Positions 37,601 to 46,600 of a DNA stretch of 64,000 nt are shown here, piece by piece. Every line of letters starts with the position of its first letter. The first letter of the stretch is position 1. The notes below the pieces were generated by a model. That model did not search any database, was not told where the DNA came from, and saw nothing but the letters and a program-made list of their open reading frames with translations. Made by a program: the position numbers and the translations under genes. The DNA comes from Ranitomeya imitator (lineage: Eukaryota), in assembly GCF_032444005.1 (NCBI RefSeq), contig NC_091291.1:7316001-7380000 (forward strand), read 5' to 3'.

Positions 37601-40600
37601 CTGTATGGTATTACGTGGTGACTGTGGCGGTATTATTTGAGCACTTCATGATGGTATGCATTTGGAAAACAATGGGTACAAACTAGAGCTCTCTGTCGTT
37701 GGTGTGCACCCTGGTGTATATGTCTCATTTTACCATATGGCGGCACTAACCGCAAAGCCTTTTTATCTCCATATATTACATTGTTTTTTGTGACTCACAT
37801 TGTCAGCGCTGGTCATATCCCCCTGCGAACACTGGATCCCAAAAGCGATCAGGCAGATGACAGCAGCCACCCACATCAGGCACTGCAGTCCTCCTGCCAG
37901 CTGCCGGGCAAACTTCACATACTCCGGGGTCCCTTTCGGGGGCTTCAGCTCATTGGGGCCATCTCTCATCAGGATCTCGCCGGCATAGCTGCTCGTCATA
38001 CCCTGCGGGTGTATATATATATGTACAATGTATCCTGAGCCATACATCGCACGGGGTCACGATCTTATGTACCCTGGGGGTGTGTGTGTGTATATATATA
38101 CATACAGTGGGGCAAAAAAGTATTTAGTCAGTCAGCAATAGTGCAAGTTCCACCACTTAAAAAGATGAGAGGCGTCTGTAATTTACATCATAGGTAGACC
38201 TCAACTATGGGAGACAAACTGAGAAAAAAAAATCCAGAAAATCACATTGTCTGTTTTTTTAACATTTTATTTGCATATTATGGTGGAAAATAAGTATTTG
38301 GTCAGAAACAAAATTTCATCTCAATACTTTGTAATATATCCTTTGTTGGCAATGACAGAGGTCAAACGTTTTCTGTAAGTCTTCACAAGGTTGCCACACA
38401 CTGTTGTTGGTATGTTGGCCCATTCCTCCATGCAGATCTCCTCTAGAGCAGTGATGTTTTTGGCTTTTCGCTTGGCAACACGGACTTTCAACTCCCTCCA
38501 AAGGTTTTCTATAGGGTTGAGATCTGGAGACTGGCTAGGCCACTCCAGGACCTTGAAATGCTTCTTACGAAGCCACTCCTTCGTTGCCCTGGCGGTGTGC
38601 TTTGGATCATTGTCATGTTGAAAGACCCAGCCACGTTTCATCTTCAATGCCCTTGCTGATGGAAGGAGGTTTGCACTCAAAATCTCACGATACATGGCCC
38701 CATTCATTCTTTCATGTACCCGGATCAGTCGTCCTGGCCCCTTTGCAGAGAAACAGCCCCAAAGCATGATGTTTCCACTACCATGCTTTACAGTAGGTAT
38801 GGTGTTTGATGGATGCAACTCAGTATTCTTTTTCCTCCAAACACGACAAGTTGTGTTTCTACCAAACAGTTCCAGTTTGGTTTCATCAGACCATAGGACA
38901 TTCTCCCAAAACTCCTCTGGATCATCCAAATGCTCTCTAGCAAACTTCAGACGGGCCCGGACATGTACTGGCTTAAGCAGTGGGACACGTCTGGCACTGC
39001 AGGATCTGAGTCCATGGTGGCGTAGTGTGTTACTTATGGTAGGCCTTGTTACATTGGTCCCAGCTCTCTGCAGTTCATTCACTAGGTCCCCCCGCGTGGT
39101 TCTGGGATTTTTGCTCACCGTTCTTGTGATCATTCTGACCCCACGGGATGGGATTTTGCGTGGAGCCCCAGATCGAGGGAGATTATCAGTGGTCTTGTAT
39201 GTCTTCCATTTTCTAATTATTGCTCCCACTGTTGATTTCTTCACTCCAAACTGGTTGGCTATTGCAGATTCAGTCTTCCCAGCCTGGTGCAGGGCTACAA
39301 TTTTGTTTCTGGTGTCCTTTGACAGCTCTTTGGTCTTCACCATAGTGGAGTTTGGAGTCAGACTGTTTGAGGGTGTGCACAGGTGTCTTTTTATACTGAT
39401 AACAAGTTTAAACAGGTGCCATTACTACAGGTAATGAGTGGAGGGAAGAGGAGACTCTTAAAGAAGAAGTTACAGGTCTGTGAGAGCCAGAAATCTTGAT
39501 TGTTTGTTTCTGACCAAATACTTATTTTCCACCATAATATGCAAATAAATTGTTAAAAAAACAGACAATGTGATGTTCTGGATTTTTTTTTCTCTGTTTG
39601 TCTCCCATAGTTGAGGTCTACCTATGATGTAAATTACAGACGCCTCTCATCTTTTTAAGTGGTGGAACTTGCACTATTGCTGACTGACTAAATACTTTTT
39701 TGCCCCACTGTATATATATATATATATATATATATATATATATATATATATACACACACATACAGAGGTATCACGGGGTCCCCATCTTGCATACCCTGTG
39801 GTATATATATATATATATACCCTGTATCCTGGGCTGTACGTTACGGTGTATCATGGGGTCCCGGTCTTGTGTACCCTGGGGGTATATATATAATGTATCC
39901 TGGGCTGTACGTTACGGTGTATCACGGGGTCCCCTTCTTACGTACCCTGGGGTATATATATACACTGTATCCTGGGCTGTACGTTACGGTGTATCACGGG
40001 GTCCCCATCTTACGTACCCTGGGGTATATATATACAATGTATCCTGGACTGTACGTTACGGTGTATCACGGGGTCCCCTTCTTACGTACCCTGGGGTATA
40101 TATATATACAATGTATCCTGGACTGTATGTTAGGGTGTATCACGGGATCCCCATCTTACGTACCCTGGGGGTATATATATATACACTGTATCCTGGGCTG
40201 TACGTTACGGTGTATCACGGGGTCCCCTTCTTACGTACCCTGGGGTATATATATATAATGTATCCTGGGCTGTACGTTACGGTGTATCACGGGGTCCCGG
40301 TCTTGCGTACCCTGGGGGTATATATATATACACTGTATCCTGGGCTGTACGTTACGGTGTATCACGGGGTCCCCATCTTACGTACCCTGGGGTATATATA
40401 TATATATACACTGTATCCTGGGCTGTACGTTACGGTGTATCACGGGGTCCCCATCTTACATACCCTGGGGGTATATATATACACTGTATCCTGGGCTGTA
40501 CGTTACGGTGTATCACGGGGTCCCCTTCTTACGTACCCTGGGGGTATATATATACACTGTATCCTGGGCTGTACGTTACGGTGTATCACGGGGTCCCCAT

Positions 40601-43600: not shown

Positions 43601-46600
43601 GTTACGGTGTATCACGGGGTCCCCATCTTACGTACCCTGGGGTATATATATACACTGTATCCTGGGCTGTACGTTACGGTGTATCACGGGGTCCCGATCT
43701 TACGTACCCTGGGGTATATATATACAATGTATCCTGGACTGTACGTTACGGTGTATCTCGGGGTCCCCTTCTTACGTACCCTGGGGTATATATATACACT
43801 GTATCCTGGGCTGTACGTTACGGTGTATCACGGGGTCCCGATCTTACGTACCCTGGGGTATATATATACAATGTATCCTGGACTGTACGTTACGGTGTAT
43901 CTCGGGGTCCCCTTCTTACGTACCCTGGGGTATATATATACACTGTATCCTGGACTGTACGTTACGGTGTATCTCGGGGTCCCCTTCTTACGTACCCTGG
44001 GGTATATATATACACTGTATCCTGGGCTGTACGTTACGGTGTATCACGGGGTCCCGATCTTACGTACCCTGGGGTATATATATACACTGTATCCTGGGCT
44101 GTACGTTACGGTGTATCACGGGGTCCCCTTCTTACGTACCCTGGAGATGCTGGTCTGGTACTTCAGCTCCAGCTCCTCGATGCTCAGCTCATGGTCGTCC
44201 TAGAAGAGTCACAATGAGACAACCTGTGTAATAGAGGCCAATATGGCGGCGATCAGCAGCTCAGGCTCTATCCGCTCCCCCTCCTGACGTGGCTGATAGC
44301 AGGGAGCACCAGCGTGCACTCCCCTGTGCAACAAGCTACTTTCCTGATGGCTGATAACAGAGAGCGAGAAATAGCACTACAAGTGAAAACAAAAACTGGC
44401 TGCAGATTTGTCATTTTTGACCGTTGTGACACATAGCAGACGTTTCCTCACTGTCGACCGCAGGATGGAGCAACGACCGCCACAAAATTGTGGTATTGGT
44501 ATCTTGACACCTTCTAGAAAGTTCTAAGGAATGCTGAAATCTCATTACATCATTGTCATCCCCAATTAAAGGAGCAGCGTAGGGTGGGGGGTGGAGGGGG
44601 CAAAAGTGAAGTCACACGTTACGTATCTGGTGACTCATGTCCTATACGTCGGTCACAGCCAGAGCTGAACTCCTAATTCTGTCGGCTACTTTGGAAGCAC
44701 CCCACATTAACCTGATATATACCGCAGCCTGAGAGCTAACAGGAATTTAGCAGAATTTTGCATGCAGCTTTAGATGTGAATGGAGCATGGAGCTCCTGAA
44801 TTCTTACAATACTCCGTCCCCCAACGCCCCAGTGACTCCTTACAATGTCCATTTCCTTCTTCATATTTTCCAGTTTTTCTTTTTTCTTCATTCCTTTTCC
44901 TTCTTTCTTCTTAATTTTCACGTCCATCTCCCCCATCCGGTCCATCCCGGCCTCCACCGAGTACATGTCATAGTTCTCCTGTGAGGGGAGAAATGAAGAA
45001 AGCATCATCGTCCCGCAAAGTATCGCAGCTGACCGCGGTGCCGTTCACTTTATCATCTACCTGTGTGCGTCGGTGCTGTGTGACCCTACTACGCTCTATG
45101 GACAATCATGCCCATCATCCCTGAGCATCCTCACATCTGACGAGTCCTCCATGTGCAACACTGTCACCCAACAGGACTGACTGATCAATGAAATGCAATA
45201 AAGTCTGCCCTACCTGTTCTGGAGGATTTATGCAGTTGTGTTTTTTTGTTTTTTCTTTTTGTACTATATCATGTAGTGCGAATTCTGACCTCCAATATTG
45301 CTGATTCTGACCTCCAACATTGCTACAATATCATCAGCAGAGAAGGCGCTGATCAGACCCGGAGGTTCTTATCACCGACTGATATCGAGACACTTCCATT
45401 TACAAAGTAACTATTAACAAAAAGCGCAGAACACGGGGAAATAACAGAAAGAAACCAAGAAGGAGCAAAAAGGACACAAAAAGCAATCATAGCAGTTACA
45501 TTCTTGTACATAAGGGCTGTATTATCGTAGTTATATTCTTGTACGTAGGTGCAGTATTATAGTAGTTATATTCTTGTACGTAGGTGCAGTATTATAGTAG
45601 TTATATTCTTGTACATAGGGGCAGTATTATAGTAGTTATATTCTTGTACATAGGGTCAGTATTATAGTAGTTATATTCTTGTACATAGGGGCAGTATTAT
45701 AGTAGTTATATTCTTGTATATAGGAGCAGTATTATAGTAGTTATATTCTTGTACATAGGGGCAGTATTATAGTAGTTATATTCTTGTACATAGGGGCAGT
45801 ATTATAGTAGTTATATTCTTGTACATAGGAGCAGTATTATAGTAGTTATATTCTTGTACATAGGGGCAGTATTATAGTAGTTATATTCTTGTACATAGGA
45901 GCAGTATTATAGTAGTTATATTCTTGTACATAGGGGGCAGTATTATAGTAGTTATATTCTTGTACGTAGGGGCAGTATTATAGTAGTTATATTCTTGTAC
46001 ATAGGGGGCAGTATTATAGTAGTTATATTCTTGTACATAGGGGGCAGTATTATAGTAGTTATATTCTTGTACATAGGAGCAGTATTATAGTAGTTATATT
46101 CTTGTACGTAGGTGTAGTATTATAGTAGTTATATTCTTGTACGTAGGTGCAGTATTATAGTAGTTATATTCTTGTACGTAGGGGCAGTATTATAGTAGTT
46201 ATATTCTTGTACGTAGGTGCAGTATTATAGTAGTTATATTCTTGTACATAGGGGCAGTATTATAGTAGTTATATTCTTGTACATAGGAGCAGTATTATAG
46301 TAGTTATATTCTTGTACATAGGAGCAGTATTATAGTAGTTATATTCTTGTACATAGGAGCAGTATTATAGTAGTTATATTCTTGTACATAGGGGCAGTAT
46401 TATAGTAGTTATATTCTTGTACATTGGAGCAGTATTATAGTAGTTATATTCTTGTACATAGGGGCAGTATTATAGTAGTTATATTCTTGTACATAGGGGC
46501 AGTATTATAGTAGTTATATTCTTGTACATAGGGGCAGTATTATAGTAGTTATATTCTTGTACGTATGAGGCAGTATTATAGTAGTTATATTCTTGTACAT

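Follow-up and report, generated by a model that had tools for sequence, protein, structure and literature searches.

The stretch of DNA analysed here, referred to below as the window, comprises 64,000 nt of the Ranitomeya imitator genome (assembly GCF_032444005.1, NC_091291.1:7,316,001-7,380,000), and all coordinates are window positions. The minus strand of the window carries ATP4A, a conserved gene that is normally highly expressed, and the third intron of this gene (38003-44139, 6137 nt, phase 0) is the element under study. Apart from one inserted transposon the intron consists of 59 head-to-tail units of about 72 nt each, as parsed at the junctions between them, and the repeat period corresponds to a 71-nt GT...AG intron plus one flanking exonic G.

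The exon-4 peptide finds its best match in the gastric H+/K+-ATPase alpha 1 of pig and human (E 4e-31), with the Na+/K+-ATPase at 2e-19. Exons 4 to 10, as located by protein-guided mapping, measure 204, 114, 135, 118, 269, 199 and 110 nt, which is the canonical layout for ATPases of this family, and their reading frame is intact and conserved. Given the exon layout across 37799-44963 (Table 1), ATP4A intron 3 is the correct name for the segment 38003-44139. The idea that the locus represents an ATP4A pseudogene was considered and ruled out, as exons 2 to 10 are intact and conserved. The remaining ATP4A introns that were mapped measure 86, 92, 120, 130 and 158 nt.

Exon 3 and the donor meet at ...ATCTCCAGG/GTACGTAAGAAGGGG (the slash marks the splice bond), and the acceptor meets exon 4 at ...TATACACCCGCAG/GGTATG. 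The strength of the authentic donor, as counted in consensus positions, is typical for ATP4A. A second GT register (TAC/GTAAGA) overlaps AGG/GTACGT 4 nt downstream, at 44131-44139 and at the start of every unit, and splicing at this second register would add 4 nt. The same doubled register is present in the ATP4A donor of the frog Engystomops pustulosus (AAA/GTAAGTAAG), which is considered further below.

Table 1. Window coordinates of ATP4A exons 2 to 4, of the parts of the intron 3 array and of the transposon within it.
Feature	Position	Strand	Details
ATP4A exon 2	~44844-44963	minus	protein-guided search (tblastn to ATP4A-like N-termini)
ATP4A exon 3	44140-44199 (60 nt, 20 residues)	minus	ends ...CTCCAGG before the authentic donor; placed by sequence and tblastn
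Authentic donor junction	44131-44143	minus	CAGG/GTACGTAAG; 7/9 positions of MAG/GTRAGT
Homogeneous part of the array, 56 units	39875-44139	minus	71-132 nt, mode 72; GTACGTAAG...GGATACAGTG-(TA)n-CCCCAG-G
Decayed unit 57	39795-39874	minus	GTACACAAGACCGGG...CCACAG-G; changes of the CpG-decay type; donor without +5 G
Decayed unit 58	38073-39794	minus	GTATGCAAGATGGGG...(TA)n...CCCCCAG-G; split by the transposon
Tc1/Sleeping-Beauty-like DNA transposon, 1606 bp	38105-39710	minus	inserted in (TA)n of the penultimate unit; TA target duplication
Last unit, diverged, 70 nt	38003-38072	minus	GTACATAAGATCGTGACC...TATACACCCGCAG; bears the authentic acceptor
ATP4A exon 4	37799-38002 (204 nt)	minus	begins GGTATG; strong donor AAT/GTGAGT at its end

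The tandem array of intron 3

Tandem Repeats Finder recovers a 72-nt period across 39810-44144 (20 + 38 copies, 87-90% matches). A 53-nt core of the unit is present in 53 copies at up to 3 mismatches, for a chance expectation of 0, and all of these copies lie on the minus strand within intron 3. The array reaches intron base +1 on one side and base -1 on the other, with no unique intron sequence remaining beside it. A typical unit reads GTACGTAAG-AAGGGGACCCCGTGATACACCGTAACGTACAGCCCAGGATACAGTG-(TA)n-CCCCAG-G; 25 units are exactly 72 nt long, and the other lengths vary mainly through the (TA)n tract, which ranges from 5 to 35 repeats. The array thereby shows the features by which minisatellites are recognized, namely a head-to-tail unit of 10-100 bp, internal variants and heterogeneous length.

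From exon 3 to exon 4 the motif CAGGGTA occurs 64 times: once at the true donor, once at the true acceptor, at 58 unit junctions and in 4 intra-unit variants. The donor core GTACGTAAG is exact at 52 of the 58 internal junctions (...CAG-G-GTA...), and in 53 units when the first unit is included; 55 of the acceptor-G-donor junctions fall in the homogeneous part (39875-44139). The acceptor and the donor that follows it are separated by a 1-nt spacer (AG-G-GT) because the repeat period takes in one flanking exonic G. A sequence-only reading of this DNA had described the region 38003-44139 as an amplified whole mini-intron with some 55-60 internal acceptor-G-donor junctions, each repeating the core of the true donor, and with a diverged last unit that ends at the real exon 4 acceptor. 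The unit and junction counts bear out this description, the last unit running up to TATACACCCGCAG/GGTATG. It had overlooked that intron 3 is not array alone, as the 1606-bp Tc1-like transposon interrupts the 59 units.

Among the 58 parsed blocks only 43 distinct unit sequences are found, and multi-unit duplications of recent date can be recognized, such as an exact 197-nt repeat shifted by 670 nt. An "ATC" variant occupies the array edges (units 2, 5, 7, 16 and 18 and the last unit), and the interior is dominated by AAG and ATG variants, which are derived. Edge-retained variants are the usual pattern when an array expands from within. The three terminal units are decayed (GTACACAAG..., GTATGCAAG... 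and GTACATAAG...CACCCGCAG) with most of the changes being CpG decay, and over its whole length the last unit represents a decayed copy. For CpG, the array has an observed/expected ratio of 0.98, the window one of 0.52. The expansion of the array appears young, and the array is probably still turning over.

The inserted element carries the features of the Tc1/mariner group, that is a TA duplication, long terminal inverted repeats (100/100 positions identical, then 197/200) and a DDE transposase with a paired-like helix-turn-helix region. Its transposase open reading frame (38321-39343, 340 aa) is intact, has the same orientation as ATP4A and matches the Pfam domains HTH_SB (5e-22), HTH_Tnp_Tc3_2 (3e-23) and DDE_3 (7e-16). 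Judging from these features the transposon is apparently young and possibly autonomous. In its 3′ part, at about 38270, an AATAAA is found on the gene strand, and 57 U1-type donor copies precede it.

Tandem arrays are error-prone in assemblies, and the copy number, or the array as such, could in principle be a mis-assembly of a much shorter repeat. The sequence itself speaks against this, as the unit variants are ordered and non-random, the (TA)n tracts vary, the edge units are decayed and the transposon is cleanly inserted with its TA duplication. Ordered variants and a clean transposon are features of real sequence and not of collapsed or inflated repeats, and an artefact of this kind is regarded as extremely improbable.

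Origin of the repeat unit

A single short intron 3 in a related frog had been proposed as a check on the amplification of a whole intron, and such an intron is present in Engystomops pustulosus. The Engystomops locus was reached by a search with a padded exon-4 alignment, which gave a partial NCBI protein and then the 3.3-kb contig WNYA01027458.1. The partial protein is identical at 62 of 68 positions in exon 4, and exons 2 and 3 match closely. ATP4A intron 3 of this species is a single copy of 109 nt. Its 5′ end (GTAAGTAAGATCCGGACC) agrees with the ATC variant of the unit (GTACGTAAGATCGGGACC) at 16 of 18 positions, and at 11 of the 12 positions beyond the donor consensus, and its 3′ end (TATACTCCCATAG/GGTATGA) agrees with that of the last unit (TATACACCCGCAG/GGTATGA) at 10 of 13. 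By these matches both ends of the Engystomops intron are homologous to the array unit. The occurrence of ATP4A introns of 86-158 nt makes a mini-intron ancestor plausible. Sequence comparison supports well the resident intron, as opposed to a foreign satellite, as the source of the unit, and an origin from an ancestral single short intron has been largely shown.

A foreign tandem repeat, be it a minisatellite or one borne by a transposon, could alternatively have invaded intron 3 and resemble splice sites by coincidence, or an array could have formed within a long intron that later lost its unique flanks. Several relatives have a longer intron 3, and the window is unusually rich in arrays, about 26 kb of the 64 kb (41%) being minisatellites of up to 100 copies whose periods lie in the range 17-86 nt. 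Dispersal is seen for at least one unit family, as an 86-nt unit (rotated consensus) forms two arrays 20 kb apart (4962-7892 and 28171-29588), one of which lies inside a downstream ATP4A intron. This 86-nt unit represents a satellite family that is dispersed and probably carried by a transposon; the 72-nt unit differs in being confined to one locus, and a search with its 53-nt core at up to 3 mismatches gave no match outside intron 3 within the window. A foreign satellite would also leave the likeness to the Engystomops intron to be explained, which at the 5′ end continues past the consensus (11/12) and is seen at the 3′ end of the last unit as well, and the exact register at both exon borders would demand two precise deletions. 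The satellite explanation is already disfavoured and is considered very improbable. Outside the window, an exact 27-mer of the unit gave 0 matches among metagenome contigs of the JGI, and the translated array frame, when compared with 5.8 billion proteins, gave 1686 word candidates of which none was significant; neither collection is a set of frog genomes, and both results are weak evidence.

The motif CAGGGTA stands at both ends of the intron with a one-base offset, as CAGG/GTA at the donor and CAG/GGTA at the acceptor. It had been proposed from the sequence that this microhomology was present at both ends of the original intron; its presence in the window stands. Exon 3 closes with the codon AAA (Lys) in Engystomops, AGA (Arg) in an mRNA of organism B, which is described below, and AGG (Arg) in the window, a series of synonymous or conservative changes by which the AGG that completes the microhomology is to be read as derived. 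An AGGGTA microhomology at both ends is therefore not necessarily ancestral. The final G of exon 3 (44140), which completes CAGGGTA, matches the array junction and may have preceded the first duplication or may have been acquired later by conversion from the array.

The array is likely to be a young, lineage-specific minisatellite that arose from the whole of an ancestral short ATP4A intron 3 together with one exonic G, and that is most likely carried as a neutral or slightly costly passenger and not as a device. The ancestor would have had one intron 3 of about 70-110 nt, similar to the neighbouring ATP4A introns and to the Engystomops ortholog. Slippage or unequal exchange between AGGGTA direct repeats would have duplicated the 72-nt period and left both exons intact, and by further unequal exchange the array would have grown to 59 units and become homogenised, with the (TA)n microsatellite growing within each unit. 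The Tc1-like transposon would have inserted later, in the penultimate unit.

Internal splice sites and their use

The internal donors are identical to the true donor (AGG/GTACGT, 7 of 9 consensus positions), and the fraction of pyrimidines upstream of the acceptors is 0.55 for internal and true sites. No match to the branch consensus YTNAY is found in the unit or in the last unit; the best branch-like motif of the unit is CCGTAAC, 34 nt from the donor, and three AGs precede the AG at the end of the unit. In the Engystomops intron this consensus is matched by a CTCAT, 24 nt before the 3′ end, and the pyrimidine tract is good. As authentic and internal sites are locally alike, the choice among them must depend on where a site lies and on its exon context. 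The donor of exon 3, which is the first in the series, would pair with the last acceptor, which is the sole acceptor placed before a definable exon (204 nt, with a GTGAGT donor), and the 58 internal donors would stay silent or be joined only to internal acceptors. An internal-to-internal splice would read CCCCAGGGGTACG with one extra G and, as it would merely shorten the intron, would be harmless, whereas a splice from an outer to an inner site would insert exactly one additional G, cause a frameshift and probably lead to nonsense-mediated decay. No special mechanism would be required for the array to be tolerated in this way, with some transcripts being wasted, and there is no evidence for a new mechanism.

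RNA contigs from four runs (X2, X3, X9 and X19) were compared on the exon-4 side (37640-38104). A 583-nt contig of organism B (run X9) differs from the window at 6 positions in the 204 nt of exon 4 and is spliced at both borders of this exon; in it GAGCTGAAGTACCAGACCAGCATCTCCAGA (...CTCCAGA) is joined directly to GGTATG, which places exon 3 next to exon 4 without an inserted G. Run X19 gave a single piece, from intron 4, and runs X2 and X3 (organism A or unlabelled), which contain 100% of the exon-4 words and should represent R. imitator, gave no contig on this stretch; a filter may by chance discard contigs. Folding of exon 3 with two units is unremarkable (z = -0.53); the minimum-energy fold pairs adjacent (UA)n tracts, and shuffled sequences do likewise. 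The possibility that RNA structure masks the internal sites is unsupported, as the fold is not unusual.

The internal junctions might instead be used, and the 6.1-kb intron be removed piecewise by ratchet (recursive) or intra-intronic splicing. Such splicing could join internal donors to internal acceptors without harm, or it could involve the outer sites and give +1G or +nG isoforms that the cell degrades or tolerates. It could draw on 52 internal donors identical to the authentic one, on acceptors as good as the real one and on a 71-nt GT...AG unit near the size of real ATP4A mini-introns (86-92 nt), and multi-step intron removal, many unannotated intronic sites and synergy at coinciding 5′ and 3′ motifs have been reported (PMC10809524). 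Against this, a step at AG-G-GT regenerates the donor only by the addition of one G, which shifts the frame, and a 1-nt "exon" cannot be recognized through exon definition. The binding of U1 and of U2AF at one junction should be mutually exclusive, which likewise counts against stepwise splicing. The unit has no YTNAY, its CCGTAAC is placed just 34 nt away from the donor and three AGs come before the terminal one, the mRNA of organism B contains no extra G, and in the human F7 gene identical downstream donors remain silent (PMC1557585). Where a ratchet site has AG/GT with no retained nucleotide, each junction here has one spacer G, and where it has a strong polypyrimidine tract and a branch site, the unit has a pyrimidine fraction of 0.55, no YTNAY and three upstream AGs. 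The recursive splicing put forward in the sequence-only reading finds no support, since AG-G-GT falls outside the AG/GT definition, and stepwise removal in any of these forms is judged unlikely.

Several observations weigh against the derivation of the array from the resident intron or against the silence of its internal sites. The alignment of the Engystomops intron with the unit is weak in mid-intron, 28-48 of 1000 shuffles reaching the observed score, and Engystomops is a fairly distant relative, with an exon identity of 83-87%; at such an identity a weak mid-intron alignment is expected. Three amphibian-like Logan contigs have more than 104, 364 and 470 nt 5′ of exon 4, which indicates that the length of intron 3 varies among amphibians; this variation has no bearing on the homology between the Engystomops intron and the unit. 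The normal exon 3-exon 4 junction of organism B does not prove skipping of internal sites, since its intron 3 might lack the array. The silence of the internal sites is a prediction from sequence and precedent, and the copy number is that of one assembly.

In the Logan contigs (L001, L002/L003 and L004, with more than 364, 470 and 104 nt of intron, respectively), which come from more distant species, exon 4 is about 80% identical to the window and the introns cannot be aligned. L002 has an intron-3 minisatellite of its own in positions 1-300, exon 4 lying at about 470-673. Its unit (GGTTGGGGTTGGCTGTAGGC..., about 60 nt) is unrelated to the 72-nt unit, and the contig begins within this array.

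A broader proposal would see in intron 3 the most extreme outcome of a process at work throughout the R. imitator genome. Intronic minisatellites would arise preferentially from segments with splice junctions, for which AGGT(A)-type microhomology or slippage coupled to transcription might be responsible, and the resulting arrays of live donor and acceptor copies would be processed by piecemeal intra-intronic splicing. This is a speculative proposal and is held to be improbable; were it true, introns in R. imitator would grow by self-copying.

Further minisatellites neighbour the ATP4A exons at 36974-37626 (intron 4) and 45489-47993 (5′ of exon 2), with 24/48-nt and 35-nt units, and neither of them touches a splice junction. 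Elsewhere in the window, a G-rich unit of 32 nt (AGCTGTGAGGAGGGAGCGGGGACCGGGGGAGA) is repeated about 100 times over 17439-20921, with a GC content of about 0.70 and a GC skew of about +0.65; this array is a potential G-quadruplex or R-loop former on the plus strand. Positions 14411-14545 are 135 consecutive N, either masked or an assembly gap.

Significance and comparison with known systems

The locus offers a base-resolved example of intron growth by self-copying, about 60-fold from some 70-110 nt to 6.1 kb, with an outgroup that retains the single-copy state, and it points to a concrete route of intron expansion for large, repeat-rich genomes. It suggests that the near-palindromic logic of splice junctions (AG/G...G/GT) can supply the microhomology for duplication. 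With 58 internal donors identical to the authentic donor and as many acceptors of no lower quality than the authentic acceptor, the intron amounts to a natural minigene series for models of site choice, among them first-donor scanning, exon definition and the exclusion of U1 and U2AF at overlapping sites, and the read-out is simple, as any mistake adds exactly one G.

The statement made from the sequence that no such structure had been described was too strong, as there are close precedents in F7 and in tandem-array introns. The 37-bp variable-number tandem-repeat (VNTR) minisatellite in intron 7 (IVS7) of human F7 spans the exon 7 donor, and its pseudo-donors are functional but silent, with the most upstream site being selected (Borensztajn et al. 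2006, PMC1557585). The first unit of the ATP4A array likewise spans the exon/intron border, and an authentic donor is followed by identical pseudo-donors: exon 3 reads ...CCAGG/GTACGTAAG and the internal sites read ...CCCCAGG/GTACGTAAG, in 52 exact internal copies. The F7 repeat concerns the donor side only and comprises few copies of its 37-bp unit, whereas in ATP4A the whole intron is repeated, the acceptor is copied too and there are 58 extra copies, each junction placing an acceptor 1 nt before a donor, which F7 does not have.

Introns composed of tandem arrays with dual-specific sites have been described for UBC, VCX3A and 77 human introns, and VCX3A intron 3 is reported to occur with an additional copy as a human insertion polymorphism (Duan 2024, PMC10809524). 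As in these introns, the ends of ATP4A intron 3 are in register with a repeat that supplies both the 5′ and the 3′ sites, and with the transposon subtracted the intron amounts to a whole number of units (59), in register at both ends. The two sites do not share one AG/GT bond, the bonds of CAG/G/GTA being 1 nt apart. In the genes of the human survey the repeat includes coding sequence, the units are often multiples of 3 and the proteins carry variable repeats, whereas ATP4A intron 3 lies between unique, conserved exons, the array is confined to the intron and use of an inner site would shift the frame. Tandem-array introns are reportedly also the subject of Zhuo et al. (PNAS, 2007), to go by the title.

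Ratchet points are defined by AG/GT with a zero-nucleotide exon (PMC10809524). ATP4A intron 3 resembles those of long Drosophila and vertebrate introns in that an intronic acceptor adjoins a donor, and stepwise removal would be possible in principle. A ratchet point stands alone in a very long intron and nothing of it remains in the mRNA, whereas the ATP4A junctions recur every 72 nt and would retain a spacer G at each step. The Rogers model is said to derive intron gain from the tandem genomic duplication of a segment that contains AGGT, and the ATP4A duplication would similarly have been seeded at splice-site-like AGGT(A) motifs, with an extra donor/acceptor pair as the outcome. The model has a new intron arise from duplicated exon sequence, whereas in ATP4A an existing intron at a conserved position has been multiplied and no new position has been gained. 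What is distinctive here is that the entire intron of a unique, conserved gene serves as the unit, in 59 copies, and that its junctions are offset such that use of an inner site would shift the frame.

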